Assembly: GCF_046119375.1 (NCBI RefSeq)
Contig: NW_027362768.1
Coordinates: forward strand, 363,010,001-363,074,000
Reading direction: 5' to 3'
DNA length: 64,000 nucleotides
DNA from: Phyllobates terribilis
Lineage: Eukaryota
Shown here: positions 32,003 to 59,213 of the stretch, one piece after another
Numbering within the stretch: position 1 is the first letter of the stretch
Layout: every line of letters begins with the position of its first letter
Notes under the pieces: model-generated
The model's input: only the letters and a program-made list of their open reading frames with translations
Told to the model about the DNA's origin: nothing
Database searches by the model: none
Program-made: the position numbers and the translations under genes

Positions 32003-45006
<13,004 letters not shown>

Positions 45007-46094: not shown

Positions 46095-49000
46095 CCCCCC
46101 CCCCGCCCCGCCCTTTGCCTAGTGAGACGACCCCCCCCGCCCTTTGCCTAGTGAGACGACCCCCCCCGCCCTTTGCCTAGTGAGACGACCCCCCCCCCGC
46201 CCTTTGCCTAGTGAGACGACCCCCCCCCGCCCTTTGCCTAGTGAGACGACCCCCCCCCCGCCCTTTGCCTAGTGAGACGACCCGCCCTTTGCCTAGTGAG
46301 ACGACCGCCCCCCCGCCCTTTGCCTAGTGAGACGACCCCCCCCCCGCCCTTTGCCTAGTGAGACGACCCCCCCCCGCACTTTGCCTAGTGAGACGACCCC
46401 CCCCCGCCCTTTGCCTAGTGAGACGACCCCCCCCGCCCTTTGCCTAGTGAGACGACCCCCCCCGCCCTTTGCCTAGTGAGACGACCCCCCCCGCCCTTTG
46501 CCTAGTGAGACGACCCCCCCCCCGCCCTTTGCCTAGTGAGACGACCCCCCCCGCCCTTTGCCTAGTGAGACGACCCCCCCCGCCCTTTGCCTAGTGAGAC
46601 GACCCCCCCCCGCCCTTTGCCTAGTGAGACGACCCCCCCCGCCCTTTGCCTAGTGAGACGACCCCCCCCGCCCTTTGCCTAGTGAGACGACCCCCCCCGC
46701 CCTTTGCCTAGTGAGACGACCCCCCCCCGCCCTTTGCCTAGTGAGACGACCCCCCCCCCCGCCCCTTTGCCTAGTGAGACGACCCCCCCCCCCGCCCTTT
46801 GCCTAGTGAGACGACCCCCCCCCCCGCCCTTTGCCTAGTGAGACGACCCCCCCCCCGCCCTTTGCCTAGTGAGACGACCCCGCCCTTTGCCTAGTGAGAC
46901 GACCCCCCCCGCCCTTTGCCTAGTGAGACGACCCCCCCCCGCCCTTTGCCTAGTGAGACGACCCCCCCGCCCTTTGCCTAGTGAGACGACCCCCCCCGCC
47001 CTTTGCCTAGTGAGACGACCCCCCCCGCCCTTTGCCTAGTGAGACGACCCCCCCCGCCCTTTGCCTAGTGAGACGACCCCCCCCGCCCTTTGCCTAGTGA
47101 GACGACCCCCCCGCCCTTTGCCTAGTGAGACGACCCCCCCGCCCTTTGCCTAGTGAGACGACCCCCCCCCGCCCTTTGCCTAGTGAGACGACCCCCCCCG
47201 CCCTTTGCCTAGTGAGACGACCCCCCCCGCCCTTTGCCTAGTGAGACGACCCCCCCCCCGCCCTTTGCCTAGTGAGACGACCCCCCCCCGCCCTTTGCTT
47301 AGTGAGACAACACCCCCCCCGCCCTTTGCTTAGTGAGACGACCCCGCCCTTTGCTTAGTGAGACGACCCACCCCCCGCCCTTTGCTTAGTGAGACGACCC
47401 ACCCCCCCGCCCTTTGCTTAGTGAGACGACCCCCCCCGCCCTTTGCTTAGTGAGACGACCCCCCCCCCCGCCCTTTGCTTAGTGAGACGACCCCCCCCGC
47501 CCTTTGCCTAGTGAGACGACCCCCCCCCGCCCTTTGCCTAGTGAGACGACCCCCCCCGCCCTTTGCCTAGTGAGACGACCCCCCCCCGCCCTTTGCCTAG
47601 TGAGACGACCCCCCCCGCCCTTTGCCTAGTGAGACGACCCCCCCCCGCCCTTTGCCTAGTGAGGCGACCCCCCCCGCCCTTTGCCTAGTGAGACGACCCC
47701 CCCCGCCCTTTGCCTAGTGAGACGACCCCCCCCCCCGCCCTTTGCCTAGTGAGACGACCCCCCCCCCCGCCCTTTGCCTAGTGAGACGACCCCCCCCCGC
47801 CCTTTGCCTAGTGAGACGACCCCCCCCGCCCTTTGCCTAGTGAGACGACCCCCCCGCCCTTTGCCTAGTGAGACGACCCCCCCCGCCCTTTGCCTAGTGA
47901 GACGACCCCCCCCCCGCCCTTTGCCTAGTGAGACGACCCCCCGCCCTTTGCTTAGTGAGACGACCCCCCCCGCCCTTTGCTTAGTGAGACGACCCCCCCC
48001 GCCCTTTGCTTAGTGAGACGACCCCCCCCCCGCCCTTTGCTTAGTGAGACGACCCCCCCCCCCGCCCTTTGCTTAGTGAGACGACCCCCCCCGCCCTTTG
48101 CTTAGTGAGACGACCCCCCCCCGCCCTTTGCTTAGTGAGACGACCCCCCCCGCCCTTTGCCTAGTGAGACGACCCCCCCGCCCTTTGCCTAGTGAGACGA
48201 CCCCCCCCGCCCTTTGCTTAGCCCCGCCCTTTGCTTAGTGAGACGACCCCCCCCCGCCCTTTGCTTAGTGAGACGACCCCCCCCCGCCCTTTGCTTAGTG
48301 AGACGACCCCCCCCCGCCCTTTGCTTAGTGAGACGACCCCCCCCGCCCTTTGCTTAGTGAGACGACCCCCCCCCCCCCGCCCTTTGCTTAGTGAGACGAC
48401 CCCCCCCCCGCCCTTTGCTTAGTGAGACGACCCCCCCCCCGCCCTTTGCTTAGTGAGACGACCCCCCCCCCGCCCTTTGCTTAGTGAGACGACCCCCCCC
48501 CGCCCTTTGCTTAGTGAGACGACCCCCCCCCCGCCCTTTGCTTAGTGAGACGACCCCCCCCGCCCTTTGCCTAGTGAGACGACCCCCCCCCGCCCTTTGC
48601 CTAGTGAGACGACCCCCCCCCGCCCTTTGCTTAGTGAGACGACCCCCCCCGCCCTTTGCCTAGTGAGACGACCCCCCCCCCGCCCTTTGCCTAGTGAGAC
48701 GACCCCCCCCCCCGCCCTTTGCCTAGTGAGACGACCCCCCCCCCGCCCTTTGCCTAGTGAGACGACCCCCCCCCCTGCCCTTTGCCTAGTGAGACGACCC
48801 CCCCCCCGCCCTTTGCTTAGTGAGACGACCCCCCCCCGCCCTTTGCTTAGTGAGACGACCCCCCCCCCGCCCTTTGCTTAGTGAGACGACCCCCCCCCGC
48901 CCTTTGCTTAGTGAGACGACCCCCCCCCCGCCCTTTGCTTAGTGAGACGACCCCCCCCGCCCTTTGCTTAGAGACGACCCCCCCCCGCCCTTTGCTTAGT

Positions 49001-52000
49001 GAGACGACCCCCCCCGCCCTTTGCTTAGTGAGACGACCCCCCCCGCCCTTTGCTTAGTGAGACGACCCCCCCCCGCCCTTTGCTTAGTGAGACGACCCCC
49101 CCCCGCCCTTTGCTTAGTGAGACGACCCCCCCCCGCCCTTTGCTTAGTGAGACGACCCCCCCCCGCCCTTTGCTTAGTGAGACGACCCCCCCCCGCCCTT
49201 TGCTTAGTGAGATGACCCCCCCCCCGCCCTTTGCTTAGTGAGACGACCCCCCCCGCCCTTTGCCTAGTGAGACGACCCCCCCCGCCCTTTGCCTAGTGAG
49301 ACGACCCCCCCCGCCCTTTGCTTAGTGAGACGACCCCCCCCGCCCTTTGCTTAGTGAGACGACCCCCCCCGCCCTTTGCCTAGTGAGACGACCCCGCCCC
49401 CGCCCTTTGCCTAGTGAGACGACCCCCCCCCGCCCTTTGCCTAGTGAGACGACCCCCCCCCCGCCCTTTGCCTAGTGAGACGACCCCCCCCGCCCTTTGC
49501 CTAGTGAGACGACCCCCCCCCGCCCTTTGCCTAGTGAGACGACCCCCCCCGCCCTTTGCCTAGTGAGACGACCCCCCCCCCGCCCTTTGCCTAGTGAGAC
49601 GACCCCCCCCCGCCCTTTGCCTAGTGAGACGACCCCCCCCCCGCCCTTTGCCTAGTGAGACGACCCCCCCCCCCGCCCTTTGCCTAGTGAGACGACCCCC
49701 CCCCCGCCCTTTGCCTAGTGAGACGACCCCCCCTGCCCTTTGCCTAGTGAGACAACCCCGCCCTTTGCTTAGTGAGACGACACCCCCGCCCCCGCCCTTT
49801 GCTTAGTGAGACGACACCCCCGCCCTTTGCTTAGTGAGACGACACCCCCGCCCCCGTCCTTTGCTTAGTGAGACGACACCCCCGCCCCCGCCCTTTGCTT
49901 AGTGAGACGACCCCGCCCTTTGCTTAGTGAGACGACCCCGCCCTTTGCTTAGTGAGACGACGACCCCGCCCTTTGCTTAGTGAGACGACCCCGCCCTTTG
50001 CTTGGTGAGACGACACCCCCCCCCCGCCCTTTGCTTAGTGAGACGACCCCGCCCTTTGCTTGGTGAGACGACACCCCCCCGCCCTTTGCTTAGTGAGACG
50101 ATCCCCCAACCCCCCGCCCTTTGCTTAGTGAGACGATCCCCCAACCCCCCGCCCTTTGCTTAGTGAGACGACCCCCCCCCCCGCCCTTTGCCTAGTGAGA
50201 CGACCCCCCCCGCCCTTTGCTTAGTGAGACGACCACCCCCCCCCCCGCCCTTTGCTTAGTGAGACGACCCCCCCCCCGCCCTTTGCTTAGTGAGACGACC
50301 CCCCCCCGCCCTTTGCTTAGTGAGACGACCCCCCCGCCCTTTGCTTAGTGAGACGACCCCCCCCCGCCCTTTGCTTAGTGAGACGACCCCCCCCCCGCCC
50401 TTTGCTTAGTGAGACGACCCCCCCCCCCGCCCTTTGCTTAGTGAGACGACCCCCCCCCCCGCCCTTTGCTTAGTGAGACGACCCCCCCCGCCCTTTGCTT
50501 AGTGAGACGACCCCCCCCGCCCTTTGCTTAGTGAGACGACCCCCCCCCCGCCCTTTGCTTAGTGAGACGACCCCCCCCGCCCTTTGCCTAGTGAGACGAC
50601 CCCCCCGCCCTTTGCCTAGTGAGACGACCCCCCCCCCGCCCTTTGCTTAGTGAGACGACCCCCCCCGCCCTTTGCTTAGTGAGACGACCCCCCCCGCCCT
50701 TTGCTTAGTGAGACGACCCCCCCCCCCGCCCTTTGCTTAGTGAGACGACCCCCCCCGCCCTTTGCTTAGTGAGACGACCCCCCCCCGCCCTTTGCTTAGT
50801 GAGACGACCCCCCCCCGCCCTTTGCTTAGTGAGACGACCCCCCCCGCCCTTTGCTTAGTGAGACGACCCCCCCCGCCCTTTGCCTAGTGAGACGACCCCC
50901 CCCCCCGCCCTTTGCCTAGTGAGACGACCCCCCCGCCCTTTGCTTAGTGAGACGACCCCCCCCGCCCTTTGCCTAGTGAGACGACCCCCCCCCGCCCTTT
51001 GCCTAGTGAGACGACCCCCCCCCCCGCCCTTTGCCTAGTGAGACGACCCCCCCCCCCGCCCTTTGCCTAGTGAGACGACCCCCCCCCCGCCCTTTGCTTA
51101 GTGAGACGCCCCCCCCGCCATTTGGTTAGTGAGACGACCCCCCCCCCGCCCTTTGCTTAGTGAGACGACCCCCCCCCCCGCCCTTTGCTTAGTGAGACGA
51201 CCCCCCCCCGCCCTTTGCTTAGTGAGACGACCCCCCCCCCGCCCTTTGCTTAGTGAGACGACCCCCCCCGCCCTTTGCTTAGTGAGACGACCCCGCCCTT
51301 TGCTTAGTGAGACGACCCCCCCCCCCGCCCTTTGCTTAGTGAGACGACCCCCCCCCGCCCTTTGCTTAGTGAGACATCCCCCCCCCGCCCTTTGCTTAGT
51401 GAGACGACCCCCCCCCCGCCCTTTGCTTAGTGAGACGACCCCCCCCCCGCCCTTTGCCTAGTGAGACGACCCCCCCCCGCCCTTTGCCTAGTGAGACGAC
51501 CCCCCCCGCCCTTTGCCTAGTGAGACGACCCCCCCCGCCCTTTGCTTAGTGAGACGACCCCCCCCGCCCTTTGCTTAGTGAGACGACCCCCCCCCCCCGC
51601 CCTTTGCTTAGTGAGACGACCCCCCCCCGCCCTTTGCTTAGTGAGACGACCCCCCCCGCCCTTTGCCTAGTGAGACGACCCCCCCCCCCCCCGCCCCCGC
51701 CCTTTGCCTAGTGAGACGACCCCCCCCCCGCCCTTTGCCTAGTGAGACGACCCCCCCCCGCCCTTTGCCTAGTGAGACGACCACCCCCCCGCCCTTTGCC
51801 TAGTGAGACGACCCCCCCCCGCCCTTTGCCTAGTGAGACGACCCCCCCCCGCCCTTTGCCTAGTGAGACGACCACCCCCCCGCCCTTTGCCTAGTGAGAC
51901 GACCACCCCCCCCCGCCCTTTGCCTAGTGAGACGACCCCCCCCCCGCCCTTTGCCTAGTGAGACGACCCCCCCCCCGCCCTTTGCCTAGTGAGACGACCC

Positions 52001-52725
52001 CGCCCCCCGCCCTTTGCCTAGTGAGACGACCCCGCCCCCCGCCCTTTGCCTAGTGAGACGACCCCCCCCCCGCCCTTTGCCTAGTGAGACGACCCCCCCC
52101 GCCCTTTGCCTAGTGAGACGACCCCCCCCCGCCCTTTGCCTAGTGAGACGACCCCCCCCGCCCTTTGCCTAGTGAGACACCCCCCACCGCCCTTTGCCTA
52201 GTGAGACGACCCCGCCCTTTGCTTAGTGAGACGACACCCCCGCCCCCGCCCTTTGCTTAGTGAGACGACACCCCCGCCCTTTGCTTAGTGAGACGACACC
52301 CCCGCCCTTTGCTTAGTGAGACTACACCCCCCCCGCCCTTTGCTTAGTGAGACGACCCCGCCCTTTGCTTAGTGAGACGACCCCGCCCTTTGCTTAGTGA
52401 GACGACGACCCCGCCCTTTGCTTAGTGAGACGACCCCGCCCTTTGCTTGGTGAGACGACACCCCCCCCCCCCCCCCCCCGCCCTTTGCTTAGTGAGACGA
52501 CCCCGCCCTTTGCTTGGTGAGACGACACCCCCCCGCCCTTTGCTTAGTGAGACGATCCCCCAACCCCCCGCCCTTTGCTTAGTGAGACGATCCCCCAACC
52601 CCCCGCCCTTTGCTTAGTGAGACGACCCCCCCCCCCCCCCCGCCCTTTGCTTAGTGAGACGACCCCGCCCTTTGCTTGGTGAGACGACACCACCCCCCCC
52701 CCCCGCCCTTTGCTTAGTGAGACAC
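46095..52725. repeat. 6.6-kb C-rich/G-rich satellite, unit ~26-35 bp: GCCCTTTGC(C/T)TAGTGAGACGA(C)n
   Basis: Roughly 200+ head-to-tail units with a variable poly-C tract. Confidence 0.98.
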
Positions 52726-53130
52726 ACGCCTCCCCCCCCACGCGGACTCTTTGGGTCGGCCGACGCCTCCCCCCTTTTGTGTCCCATTAGCTCACTGCTC
52801 AGCTGCACATGCACCCAATCACCACCGGGGGCGTCGTGGGTTTTTACTTGCCCCAATCCAGAATGAAAGGTGCAACACAGCAGCGTCAGCTCTGGGTAAA
52901 AAGCACAAATCTCCAAAATAATCCACAATGTACATCCCCCTGTAATAATAAATATATATATATATGTTAATGTCGATCTACGACCACGGTGTTCGTTATT
53001 TGAAGCTTTTTACATTAATAATGGTGATTGCGGAGATCGCAGGACGTGAACTTGCCGCCGTGATCTGGATTTCATCGTCGTCTTTTGAGAATAAGCTGGA
53101 AATAAATGAAGGCGTCTTTCCTTTAGGATA

Positions 53131-56100
53131 ATGGAGACTTGTGAGCAGGAAGCGTCTGACGGAGGCCAGGAAGGCGCGGAGGTGAACGCTCAGTATTTAC
53201 AGCAGCTCAAGGACCTGGCGATTCCTGAAGACGAGGCCAAGAAGGTAAAAGGAGAGAGGAGATGTAAGGTGGAGCCATAGGGGAGCAGAAAGGCCTGGCA
53301 GCGCTGTAATGGGGGCACCGTGGGGCTTTACTGCGCATTATTTACTTGTCCATATCCACACTGCCTTCCATCCAGTGCCGGATTATAGACATGTTCCTCC
53401 TCTTAGACTCTTTTGCTGGAGGCCCGCTGCAGGTGAAGTAGAGTTTCAGGGGCCGGATACCGGCCATAAATCTCCTGACCCCAAACAGCATTCTGAGGGG
53501 CATTTCTGAGGGTGTTGAGTTCAGGTCCGGAGACGCTCCGGTGCCCCAGAAATCCCAGACATGTGAACGCTGCCTTACTTTGCACGTGCCAGATACTGCT
53601 GGGAAACCAGGAGGGTGTGACTCCTCGAGTCCAGGACCCGCCCACATGACTGTTCACAGGTAGTGCGCACGGTGCTGTGTGACGCATCGTCAGCGGTTCG
53701 GGGCTTCGTGTGTGATGACCGCTTCCATTTAGTTTTTTTATTTTCATTATCACATCCTTAAATATTATATTCAGTGGGTATGTAGCCACTGAGGACAGCA
53801 TGGACGCCATTAAAGGTCCCCGTCGTGGATCCGCTTTCCTGGGTACGGACAGAGTCGGCGTATCACTGGGTACATTTACATTTTAGGGCCCGAGCAGCCA
53901 TATTGGAAGTCGCTCAGCTTTGCAGTAGGACCGCGATCATGTTTTTTTTCCCCTCGATTCTTACAGGCGCTTATTCTGACTGGGAACGTATCGGCCGAAG
54001 AAGCTGCAATATTTTACTTCGACAGCTTAGAAAACCAGAATCCAGTAAGTGGCCTCTGAATAATGAGTTAAAGTGATTTTCCACAGCTTTAACTTTCATA
54101 GCCGTGTGATTGATGTGGGAGCATGATGTCCGAGCCGCGCCGATCATCAGAATGAAGGGGCTGCAGGACTGGAAACAGCGGCACTTATGTCTCACGAGTA
54201 AGACTCATCTGCAGTACCAGATGCAACCACACATGGCGCCGTGTCTGTGAGCTGACATAAAACCTTTAATAGTCGATGTCACCAGGGTCGGACTGGGGCA
54301 CCGGGACACCGGAGAATTCTCCGGTGGGCCCGGGTCCTCAGCTGGCCCCTGAGCAGGACACATGGGGCCCCTGGTTAACATGGCTGCCGGTGCTCCACAC
54401 TGCAGGAGGGCCCTTGCAGTGCGGCTGATGAGGGCAATCTGAATCTAGCCTGCTTCTCGGACCCCCAGGCTCCGGGGGGCCCATGGCCAGATTGCCCTCA
54501 TATTGTGTGATGGGCAGGGAGCGATCCCTCCGCTGCCGACAGGAGGAAAATGGCAGCGGAGCTGGAGGAATCCGGTGTCCTCACCTCTGCTTCCTGCCTG
54601 CCGCTTCCTCCCCGACACAGGCGCGCGCTGCTCGATGACGTCACCATGCAGCGCGAACCTGTGTTAGGGAGAAAGATGCCAGGCAAGAAGCGGAGGACGA
54701 TTCTTTGGGGGAACGTGTTGAGAGTAAGTGTTTTTTAGATAATTTTTTTTTTTTTTTTTTTTTTTTTACCGACTGAAGATGGGGAGAAATGGGGGGAGAT
54801 GAGGGAGAGCAATGGTGATGGTGGGGGGAGATATGACATGGCACTGGTGACGGAGGAGGTGGGGGAGATATGGCAATGATGACGAATTATTTGGACTCTA
54901 TATGCTGTTAATATCTGGTCTGGTCACGGTGTGGTGGTATTTCTCCCTTGTATGTGGTACTATTGGTGTTGGTATAGTGGATTGTGCTGTGTATGGCGGT
55001 CATTTGTTCTCTCTGATATTAATTAGAAGATTCTTTATTTCCATTAGTGATTAATACTTGGAACAAGATGCACTTACAGGGGTTCTCTGGGGAAAACAAG
55101 TAATCACCTCTCCACAGGATAAGTGATAAATTATTGATTAGTGGGGGTCTGACTGCTGGGACCCGCACTGATTGGTAGAATGTGGAGCTTTTCTCCCCAT
55201 TAGACTGGAGCTCATGTGCGACTTGACCACTGATCCATTCATTCCCTCACTGGCTGTTCTTGTTTTTTTCTGGAAGCCCCAAAGAGAATGAATAGAGCTG
55301 TGATCAGACGTCCCACCTGCCGCTGCTTTTAAAATGGGGATAAGTGTCCTGCCAGGGATAAAACTTCCCCATTCTTCCGATAAATGCGTTTTCCAATGTT
55401 CGGTCCCAAACGATCAATAAGTGATCACCGATCCTGTGGATTCCATGGATCGGTGATAACTCGTTTTAACCAAAGAACCGCTTTAATGCAAACTACCGTA
55501 ATTCTACATCCCAGTTATGGTGGTGCACAGTATATGTGCAGGAGCCGCCTGTGATTTACAGCCGACGCTCCACTATAACGGGGATATCGGCTAACAGTTA
55601 TTTGCATATAGATGTAGGGTGGGCCCCGAGGATCAATTCCTCCTGTGGGCCCCAGACACCCCAGTCAGACACTGGATGTCACTGAATGTGCAGCGCTCCA
55701 TTTATTTCCAATATTTATAATTGGGCTCTGATTGTTGTTTAGGACACGGATGACGACGACACTTACTTCAAGATGGTGTTTGTGGTGAACACGGATCTGT
55801 CTATGGGAGTAGGGAAGGTAAGAACTCATTACCCCGACAGAGACACTACTATAATATTCCTTAAAGGTATATTCCCATCTGGTGCATTTATGCCATAGAT
55901 GTGTAGTAGATGAGGATCCCAGCTGTGACGTCAGATAAATGAGAATTCTGACACGCTGCCCGGGCACCATTGGTGGGACTATACAATTATAGCATACCCC
56001 GTGGATATGCTAGTTGTACAAAATGGGAAATACCTCTTTAAATCAGATTGCAAATCCTACGATCTGTGCACACAAAGCTCTTTTGGCACATTCCCTTTAT

Positions 56101-58389
56101 GGAGGCTTTTTTGGTCCTTATAAGACCCTCACACTCATGTATTGTATGCAGCGATGTAGATTTATCCCTGGCCCAGGTGTATGTCCATACAACCTTCATG
56201 GATACATCTACAGCCTTGCCGGGTGCAGCGATGCCTGAGCGGCGGCTCCCCCTCGCTCTGCCGGCAGAGTATGTGACGTGTATAGAGCATTTGTTAGATC
56301 GGCCATTAATCCGTCCCGCTCTCCTCAGATTGCCGCACAGGTGGGACACGGTGCCGTCGGCTTATATCAGCTCATGTTAAAGGACTCCAAGACCAAGGAG
56401 ATGGTGGAGAAATGGGAAGAATACGGGTAAGTCTGGACGGGATTCATGTTCTCGTGGCTCAAGAGGGATGTAGTTATAGAGGTAGGAATCCTTTCCGTAT
56501 GATTTTGGAGCTTTCATTTTGTTTTGTTTTTTCCTACCCTTCCTCCAAGAGTCATGATCTTTTTTTTTTTTTTTTTTTTACCCATCTACATAGCTTTTTG
56601 CAGTACGAGTTTTGAGTTTATATAGGAAAATTATGTCCTGAAAAAATAGCAACAAAAATTCTAAATGCAAGTGAATTCTTGGAGGGGGTAAAAAAAAAAA
56701 ACAACCCGCAATTCCACCATTAGTTTTTTGGGGTTTTGTTTTTATAGCATTGAGTTCCTGGTCAGCACGATTAGTGATGATAAAAAAATAAATCAGAAGT
56801 TAATTGGGGTTTGTGTCGTAATTTTCAGACTTTTTATTTTCCTGACTATGGAGCATGTGAGGACTTGTTCTTTGTGCAGTGAGCTGACACTTTTATCAAT
56901 GTAGAGTTAGGCTATGTGCCCACGATGCAGAAATGCTCCGGATTTTTCCTGAGCGTTTCTGAATCTCCCTGGCAGAAAAAAAACGCATGCGGATTGTACA
57001 TGCGGATTGTACATGCGGATTGTACATGTGTTTTTCCTGCCAGGGACATGCGGATGTGAAGCGTTCTTCACATGCATTTCCGCATGCGGGTTGACAAGCG
57101 CTTTCCAAGCGATTTTAGCTTCACTTGGAAAGTGCTTGACAACTTGGTCACACTATATAAATCCATGCAACCGGCATGGATTTATATAGTGTGACCGTAA
57201 AAGAATGGTAAAAAATACAAAATAAATATACTTACCTTCTGATGGCCCCCGGTCTCCCCGGCGGTCTAAAAGGACCTGCCATGACGTCATTTAGTCATGT
57301 GACGGGTCACGCGACCGTCGACGTCAGCGATCGCGTGACCCGTCACATGACTAAATGACATCATAGCAGGTCCTTTTAGACCATCGTGAGCTGCCAGCAA
57401 GCCAGGACGGATCGGATAAGGACACCAGGGGCCATCAGAAGGATGAGTATAATGAATATTTTTTTATTTCATTCTTTTTTTTTTTTTACATGTTCTATGG
57501 TACCTGGGTCCGGAGGAGAGTCTCCTCTTCTCCAAACCCGGGTACCTTCCGCACATTAAACCGCATGATATCCGCATGTGCACATGTAGTGATGCGGATG
57601 TCATGCGCTCCAATGCAAGTCAATGGCGGCAAAAATGACGCGATTCTGCAAAATAATTGGTAGTGCTGCGGATTTTTCCGCAGCGGAAATTTCCGCAGCA
57701 TGTGCACAGCACATGCAGATTATCATTGGGGGACATGGCAGACCTTCTACCAAGCGTTTTGTAAGCGTTTCTGCAGCCGAATTGCCGCTGCGGAAACACT
57801 TAAAAAACGCATAGTGGGCACACAGCCTTAATACAGGATGTAACTCAGGATCAGTAATGTATGTACACAGTGACTGCACCAGCAGAATTGTGAGTGCTGC
57901 TCTGGAGTATAATACAGGAGGTAACTCAGGATCAGTACAGGATCAGTAATGTATGTACATAGTGACTGCACCAGCAAAATAGTGAGTGCAGCTCTGGAGG
58001 ATAATACAGGATGTAACTCAGGATCAGTAATGTATCAATGGCTGCAGAGCTGTAAATCCTCCTTCCCTCTTTTTCTTTTGTTCCTTATTTTTGCTGTTTT
58101 TTCTCTGCAGAGCTAAGAAGGTGGTCCTCCAGGGCTCCAGCACTGCTCACCTTATGGAGTTACAAGCCTTGGCATTAAGCATGGACATCCCCTCGTACCT
58201 AGTGCAGGATGCCGGCAGGACCCAGGTATGACATTCAGCACCTTAGACTTCAGTAAGGCCTGGACTGTTAAGACATCTGACGTCCTGTTTTGTCTTCAGA
58301 TCGCAGTCGGGTCACGCACTGTCCTCGCCATCATGGGTGAAGAAGAAATGGTGAATAAAGTGACGGGAAAGCTGAAACTGCTGAACTGA
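53131..58389 (+). CDS. PTH2-family peptidyl-tRNA hydrolase with N-terminal UBA-like domain, 189 aa, 6 coding exons
   Basis: Exons 53131-53244, 53967-54044, 55743-55817, 56329-56426, 58111-58225 and 58300-58389 sum to 570 nt, all GT-AG, phases 0,0,0,2,0. PTH2 motifs: [26 protein letters not shown], W...GAKKVVL, LVQDAGRTQI, TVLAI..KLKLL. N-terminus LQQLKDLAIPEDEAKKALILTGNVSAEEAAIFY is UBA-like. Confidence 0.92.
54283..55674. mobile_element. Non-autonomous hAT element with a nested T2-type MITE (~55075-55490)
   Basis: Imperfect TIR CAGGGTCGGACTGGGG / CCCCAGTCAGACACTG and a perfect 8-bp TSD GATGTCAC (54275-54282 and 55675-55682). Confidence 0.85.
56910..57827. mobile_element. PIF/Harbinger-type MITE
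   Basis: TIR GGCTATGTGCCCAC / GTGGGCACACAGCC with TTA TSD (56907-56909 and 57828-57830) and a central 28-bp perfect inverted repeat. Confidence 0.85.
57831..58035. repeat. ~80-bp tandem repeat (same family as 14003-14304), about 2.5 copies, in PTH2 intron
   Basis: ATACAGGATGTAACTCAGGATCAGTAATGTATGTACACAGTGACTGCACCAGCAG units. Confidence 0.9.
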
Positions 58390-59213
58390 GGGGAGAGCAA
58401 GGCGAGCCGAAGGCATCTACCTGGAGAAGATGGAGGGACAGCTGATGAGACATCCCAGACGCGTCCTCCAGAGTGGGAGAAGAATACAGGACATGAGTGA
58501 ATCGTGCTCCAGAGCCATTGCCAATCAATGAGGAAAGAGACGCAGAGTCTTATTACATAATGCAAACTATGGTGGTGATAGAAGTAGGTACCTAGAGCCG
58601 CTGGCATCAGTCGGCGCCAGGATCCTGCCCCACCCGTGTACATTGTGCTGCCATCTTGTGATCTAGATCTCCATTCGCTGTATGACAACGACATCTCTTG
58701 CATGCAGAACCGCTGATCCCAAACCGTTTGCATCACTGAAATGGCTGATAACGGGGAACACTAGACTGGATTCAATCGCCCTGCTGCCACGCGTTCCCCC
58801 TGTGCTTCTGCCATAAAGGAACGTGGAGGCGAGCGGATTCCCCTTGATAGTGTCCTCAAGTGTCAGAGTGATCATCATTAGGGATCAGTGATAATTCGGG
58901 GGATGTGAAAGAGACATGTAGGTATTTTAGTTAGTTACATCTTAAAAGAACGCTTCGCTGGTAACATCTACAGCGCGGCCACTTCCATTATTAGGGATCT
59001 TTTTTTTTTTCTTGTATTGATAAAGTATTACAATATGATGCGAATAGATGTCACTGATATATTAAATATTACCATAGAATTATGGCGGAGGTGATCGTCC
59101 ATCGTCATCCGTCAGTGAATCCACGGCTCTGATTCATGACCACTGACTGGTGGAGATGATCGATAATCCTTGTGATGTCTGGACTACTGAGCGACTCTGA
59201 GACAGCTGCTTAC

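Follow-up and report, generated by a model that had tools for sequence, protein, structure and literature searches.

Known relatives of the gene considered here include mammalian PTRH2 (Bit1) and yeast Pth2. When cytosolic ribosomes are destabilised, yeast Pth2 hydrolyses the resulting peptidyl-tRNAs, and reporters carrying runs of aspartate or glutamate (D/E) become lethal to cells that lack it (PMC9718836). In a passage citing Ishii et al. 2006, PMC4092868 states that polyubiquitinated proteins co-purify with yeast Pth2, which also binds Rad23 and Dsk2 through their ubiquitin-like (UBL) domains. Here, we describe a gene in a stretch of 64,000 nucleotides (nt) of the Phyllobates terribilis contig NW_027362768.1 (positions 363,010,001 to 363,074,000; this whole stretch is hereafter the window, and coordinates are counted from its first letter), which encodes a protein joining a ubiquitin-associated (UBA) domain to a PTH2 domain. 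A previous reading of this DNA, referred to below as the original prediction, had proposed this fusion and had linked yeast Pth2 to UBL-UBA shuttle proteins, a link that the passage of PMC4092868 does state. We regard it as nearly certain that the gene encodes a soluble UBA + PTH2 paralogue of 189 amino acids (aa). The best overall explanation, to which we give a probability of roughly 0.55, is that PTRH2 has a paralogue conserved in Metazoa, that the gene is its frog orthologue and that the product acts as a UBA-tethered peptidyl-tRNA hydrolase.

Domain architecture of the product

Residues 73-189 form a complete PTH2 domain (PF01981), and the exon-encoded pieces lie colinearly on the Pfam profile (positions 1-17, 18-46, 50-86 and 88-115 of 115). 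Among solved structures, the best match of this domain is human Bit1/PTRH2 (1q7s, E = 1.2e-22); 1q7s, 1wn2 and 1rlk match at E = 1e-22 to 1e-18, with the archaeal Pth2 structures slightly behind Bit1. The matches to the domain are all of the PTH2/PTRH2 type with the DAGRTQ motif. After the domain and word searches, the analyses mainly used the protein of Anomaloglossus baeobatrachus (P0001) as a stand-in for the window protein. Across 42 orthologues, K74, K89, H96, D155, G157 and T159 are invariant and Q93 is nearly so, and across 150 diverse PTH2 representatives, the Q, H, D, G and T of Q..H and DAGRTQ are invariant and the lysines nearly so; all of these residues are present in the window protein. 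The PTH2 domain would presumably share its hydrolase chemistry with canonical PTRH2/Pth2.

The N-terminal domain was analysed with the spliced N-terminal 70 aa of the product, in which residues 19-61 match the Pfam family PF22562 (UBA_7) with 32.1 bits against a cut-off of 27 (E = 1.1e-7). A Pfam scan of single exons gave no UBA match from the 38- and 26-aa pieces, because these two pieces split the domain. An AlphaFold2 model, built from an alignment of the 42 orthologues headed by the 98%-identical P0001, places helices at residues 20-28, 33-42 and 48-62 with a predicted local distance difference test (pLDDT) score of 93-96 (overall mean pLDDT 86.6), followed by a disordered acidic linker (63-68) and the PTH2 alpha/beta fold. 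The N-terminal family profile matches the solved UBA domains of USP13 (E = 2.8e-15) and USP5 (1e-14), and also those of UBXN1, UBASH3A/B, HUWE1, Ddi1 and UBAC1. In a Foldseek search with the UBA-only model, which was used by its ranking only and alongside the profile search, the top neighbours are nearly all UBA domains, e.g., the Ddi1 UBA at a root-mean-square deviation of 1.2 Å over 40 columns. The N-terminal domain is thereby modelled as a three-helix UBA bundle.

The stretch that precedes the PTH2 domain is acidic, not basic, and its maximum 19-residue hydropathy is 0.86, whereas most canonical members reach 1.4-2.9. Given the low hydropathy and the acidic composition, a membrane anchor and a mitochondrial presequence would both be expected to be missing from the window protein. 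The original prediction had read the product in much the same way. Its 189 aa, acidic N-terminus, LAI in the position of the usual MGF loop and DTDDDD linker are all recovered in the rebuilt coding sequence, as are the PTH2 motifs that it named (GK..AAQ..H, KKVV and QDAGRTQ). The complete PTH2 domain that it claimed is borne out by the colinear match to the full profile and by the retention of every family-invariant residue, its three-helix UBA-like segment by the UBA_7 score, the modelled helical bundle and the matches to solved UBA domains, and the lack of a hydrophobic anchor by the hydropathy maximum.

Relation to PTRH2 and distribution among animals

For comparison with the known gene, canonical animal PTRH2 sequences were obtained by a word search that started from an anchored PTH2 of a choanoflagellate, and a maximum-likelihood tree was built from the PTH2 domains of 43 proteins of known organism, with unnamed and fragmentary rows excluded. 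In this tree, the 21 UBA-type and the 22 canonical proteins fall on opposite sides of one branch (support 99/99); the window sequence stands beside the Anomaloglossus protein, and the canonical frog gene stands with bird PTRH2. A quick tree of 150 rows was poorly resolved, with 89 for its main split in the Shimodaira–Hasegawa-like approximate likelihood ratio test (SH-aLRT). When the UBA-type and canonical proteins of vertebrates were constrained to a common clade, the log-likelihood fell by 68.9 units (p = 2e-5 in the approximately unbiased (AU) test), although the test is weakened in that the grouping was picked after the tree had been seen. Both genes occur in one frog, Engystomops pustulosus, which has a UBA-type protein (P0008) and a "Peptidyl-tRNA hydrolase 2, mitochondrial" (P0345). 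Furthermore, the PTH2 domain of the window is 44.9% identical to frog canonical PTRH2, versus 58-61% to the UBA-type proteins of a mussel, a chiton and a scorpion. The tree split, the co-occurrence in one frog and the identity pattern together argue that the UBA-PTH2 gene is an old paralogue of PTRH2 with a pan-metazoan or wider range, and that no characterised mammalian gene is its orthologue.

A word search with the 119-aa PTH2 domain of the window gave 262 matches, and the best 120 were examined. The best match is an Anomaloglossus baeobatrachus protein of 189 aa, named "putative peptidyl-tRNA hydrolase 2" by NCBI, which is identical at 185 of 189 positions over its full length (97.9%). Other frogs are about 87% identical, and the sauropsid and fish orthologues 60-76%. 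Among the matches listed, the pair PF22562 + PF01981 is pre-annotated in proteins of 178-207 aa; its carriers include many frogs, salamanders, caecilians, turtles and squamates, the coelacanth, bichir, gar, many teleosts, sharks, rays and a chimaera and, among invertebrates, a scorpion and molluscs. For the tuatara, the single entry is 154 aa long and has PF01981 as its sole annotated domain. UBA_7 + PTH2 is present in more than 100 annotated orthologues, often under the NCBI name "UBA_like_SF and PTH2 domain-containing protein" and otherwise as a probable or putative peptidyl-tRNA hydrolase 2, and a look-up in the ESM Atlas found the same clusters already existing. The gene family and its domain pair are already annotated in databases, and the window copy is an ordinary orthologue.

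An exhaustive HMMER search with the PTH2 domain against 1.84 billion cluster representatives yielded 3467 matches. Among the best 150, with scores down to 93 bits, 90 carry UBA_7, 61 carry UBA and 3 carry a UIM, and vertebrate canonical PTRH2 was not reached. The organism-labelled UBA-type representatives are all animal (the sponge Amphimedon, sea urchins, a starfish, a copepod, Artemia and nematodes), and the anchored, UBA-less representatives that were looked up come from protists and fungi. Within the same 150, 8 also match COX16 and 2 match Alg14, and one clade consists of long PTH2 proteins of 246-597 aa, whose nematode member has a UBA together with a strongly hydrophobic N-terminus. Such long or extra-domain representatives (e.g., P0176, P0178, P0166, P0203 and P0207) could either genuinely combine several domains or result from the merging of gene models.

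The best 120 of the 262 word-search matches, which extend down to 56-61% identity, include no protein from birds, crocodilians or mammals. Since many bird and mammal proteomes are annotated and yet none is listed, this is good, if indirect, evidence for a loss of the UBA-PTH2 gene in birds and mammals, and perhaps in crocodilians too. The distinctness from anchored PTRH2/Bit1 that the original prediction proposed thus agrees with the 99/99 split, the missing anchor and the two genes in one frog, and the phylogeny against PTRH2 rejects plain orthology to the mammalian gene. Its statement that the architecture occurs in fish and invertebrates is matched by the annotated domain pair in both. The suggested mammalian loss holds as far as the best 120 matches go, with birds and crocodilians missing as well. 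Its claim to novelty was overstated, given that well over 100 species are already annotated with exactly this domain pair.

Gene structure, expression and genomic context

The window reads as DNA of a vertebrate type, with genes split by introns. The gene occupies 53131-58389 on the + strand, where six coding exons, with every intron bounded by GT-AG, give a 570-nt coding sequence (Table 1). A search of public sequencing runs found eight runs from one organism and two studies in which about 22-24% of the sampled words are present, the share expected if only exons and untranslated regions (UTRs) are present. Four runs from two studies, which are presumed rather than documented to be RNA, were compared with 52900-58700. 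Each of the four gave one contig of 1.1-2.3 kb that skips exactly the five modelled introns. Exons 1-5 show zero mismatches in all four runs, as does the coding part of the last exon; two runs differ at three positions 3' of the stop codon, i.e., in the 3' UTR. Two independent studies both show intron-less joins at GT..AG sites, for which it is difficult to see a source other than spliced RNA. The UBA-PTH2 gene is therefore real, intact, spliced and expressed.

The RNA contigs also extend the model at both ends. At the start of the first coding exon, they use an AG acceptor near 53125, and a further 3-116 nt on their 5' side map outside 52900-53124. The acceptor and the unmatched 5' bases imply at least one short non-coding exon upstream of 52900. 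At the other end, the 3' UTR runs past 58700. Within intron 4, the segment 56780-58137 has a contig depth of 10^4 to 10^5, compared with a few hundred to about 2,000 on the exons, and numerous loose ends and internal joints in the contigs from the public runs. This indicates a highly repeated and highly transcribed interspersed-repeat sequence within the intron.

Upstream on the same strand lie exons of an SRPK-like kinase. In the turtle Emydura macquarii, NCBI models (P0122, P0273 and P0274; 360-444 aa) fuse SRPK-like and UBA-PTH2 exons, and their pieces are colinear with 33311-38618 and 53964-58386 (+) of the window, which implies that turtle and frog share this gene order. The frog RNA contigs, which reach at most 116 nt 5' of the first coding exon, give no sign of an SRPK-like fusion. 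Most of the gap separating the two frog genes is filled by a 6.6-kb minisatellite with a C-rich unit (C-run, GCCCTTTGCCTAGTGAGACGA), with 68% GC and a strong skew of C over G on the + strand. The minisatellite or its surroundings may contain the unplaced 5' UTR exon or the promoter of UBA-PTH2.

Table 1. Coordinates of the UBA-PTH2 exons and of neighbouring features in the window
Feature	Position	Strand	Content
Exon 1	53125..53244	+	ATG at 53131; coding 53131-53244, residues 1-38: acidic tail, UBA helix 1, LAI loop, start of helix 2
Exon 2	53967..54044	+	Residues 39-64: remainder of UBA helix 2, helix 3, start of linker
Exon 3	55743..55817	+	Residues 65-89: DTDDDD acidic linker, first PTH2 strand to invariant GK
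Exon 4	56329..56426	+	PTH2 profile positions 18-46; invariant Q93, H96
Exon 5	58111..58225	+	PTH2 profile positions 50-86; KKVV, QDAGRTQ (invariant D155, G157, T159)
Exon 6, coding part	58300..58389	+	PTH2 C-terminus and TGA stop
SRPK-like kinase exons	33311..38618	+	Upstream of the UBA-PTH2 gene, same strand
C-rich minisatellite	46101..52743		Unit 29-30 nt, about 218 copies; between the SRPK-like and UBA-PTH2 genes

Proposed function and comparison with known systems

We propose that the PTH2 domain would, like yeast Pth2, hydrolyse the ester bond of peptidyl-tRNAs that have departed from, or are exposed on, cytosolic ribosomes. Canonical PTRH2/Pth2 is placed on mitochondria by its membrane anchor, and in the present protein the UBA may take over as the localising module by tethering the enzyme to ubiquitin- or UBL-marked partners. 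Such partners might be nascent chains still attached to tRNA and ubiquitylated, or else proteasome factors and shuttle proteins of the UBL-UBA type. We favour tethering because the nearest UBA relatives belong to deubiquitinases and other ubiquitin-system proteins; as a proposed mechanism, its chances appear close to even, or slightly below. If the UBA does bind ubiquitin, the protein would physically and directly connect ubiquitin marking to the hydrolysis of peptidyl-tRNA. A bolder version would make UBA-PTH2 a dedicated ubiquitin-coupled hydrolase of ribosome-associated quality control, which frees ubiquitylated nascent chains from tRNA in most animals and was lost independently in birds and mammals (perhaps also crocodilians), where other release factors would substitute for it. 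We consider this bolder version doubtful.

Two alternatives concern what the gene is. A mis-predicted gene, or a pseudogene pieced together from chance open reading frames, has the short exons as the sole point in its favour and is hardly credible when set against the splicing of all five introns as modelled in contigs from four runs and two studies, the intact frame, the 98% identity to the sister-species annotation and the conservation across Metazoa; it was rejected on these grounds. The second alternative, in which the gene is orthologous to mammalian PTRH2/Bit1 and has diverged at its N-terminus, would agree with human Bit1 as the best solved-structure match and with the name "putative peptidyl-tRNA hydrolase 2" given by NCBI. 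However, the branch that parts the UBA-type from the anchored PTH2 domains, the presence of both gene types in Engystomops pustulosus, the AU test (with the weakness noted above) and the lower identity to frog PTRH2 than to mollusc and scorpion UBA-type proteins all speak against it, and we regard this alternative, which is ruled out by the tree, as very improbable.

The third alternative accepts the enzyme and questions its UBA, which would not be a ubiquitin receptor but a generic interaction, dimerisation or stabilising module, leaving the protein a cytosolic housekeeping PTH2. Such a UBA could bind a translation or ribosome-associated factor, in the manner of the UBA/TS-N folds of EF-Ts and NAC, or could protect the protein from the proteasome; Rad23 and Dsk2 are shielded from degradation by their UBA domains, according to PMC4092868. 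Several observations favour this alternative or otherwise weigh against ubiquitin tethering. The score with the classical UBA model PF00627 is 16.2 bits, under its threshold of 22.4, a model that 61 of the 150 relatives pass at E ≤ 0.001. The 70-residue UBA-only model gave no Foldseek match at E ≤ 0.001 (best 0.2), although weak E-values are expected from only about 45 ordered residues, and the NAC UBA is among the structural neighbours. The loop between helices 1 and 2 reads (M/L)GF in molluscs, MG(V/I) in arthropods, LG(I/V) in cartilaginous fishes, squamates and turtles, LDI in ray-finned fishes and most amphibians, and LAI in the coelacanth, a microhylid frog, Anomaloglossus and the window protein. 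The window protein (L-A-I) thus departs from the conserved M/L-G-F/Y loop of UBA domains. It has A in place of the MGF-loop glycine, as teleosts and most amphibians have D, and the loss of this glycine might make binding weaker or direct it elsewhere. A UBA fold does not guarantee ubiquitin binding, which many such domains lack. Finally, a literature search for the architecture or the orthologue names found no functional, binding or activity study on any member of the paralogue family.

On the other side, the nearest profile relatives are the UBAs of USP13/USP5 and other ubiquitin-system proteins (to 1e-15), not those of NAC or EF-Ts, and 3 of the 150 representatives add a UIM, a second ubiquitin-binding motif. 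The residues flanking the loop centre, L29 (nearly invariant) and I31 (I, V or F), are hydrophobic from sponges to frogs, and helix-3 positions are conserved throughout the orthologues. We therefore judge a non-receptor UBA to be unlikely, though well short of negligible, and retain the UBA-tethered hydrolase as the preferred reading.

As a sequence feature, the gene is ordinary, and the biological function of its family is of modest interest, being experimentally accessible in Xenopus or zebrafish. Animals from sponges to reptiles retain a second soluble PTH2 enzyme joined to a UBA domain, and its apparent lack in the main mammalian model systems may explain its neglect.

Compared with known systems, the window protein is closest to the already annotated UBA-PTH2 proteins. 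Those of Xenopus laevis (P0034) and Anomaloglossus (P0001) share its length, its PF22562 + PF01981 pair and its clade, and the family shows no substantive difference from it apart from the loop, which is LAI in the window protein and a few other taxa, LDI in most amphibians and teleosts, and (M/L)G(F/I/V) in sharks, reptiles and invertebrates. The UBAs of USP5/USP13 (PDB 3ihp, 2dag and 2lbc) are the best profile matches to its N-terminal domain and cover all three helices; however, they have an MGF loop and sit inside deubiquitinases, whereas the window UBA has LAI and precedes a tRNA hydrolase. ANKZF1/Vms1 and PTRH1 may overlap with it in substrate class (peptidyl-tRNA outside normal termination), whereas their folds and domain sets are unrelated to its own. 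The canonical PTRH2 domains of frog and bird are only about 45% identical to the window PTH2 and form a separate clade. With mammalian PTRH2/Bit1 (1q7s) and yeast Pth2, the window protein has the catalytic fold and the invariant residues in common, whereas those two enzymes have a hydrophobic N-terminal anchor and no UBA, and the window protein has the reverse.

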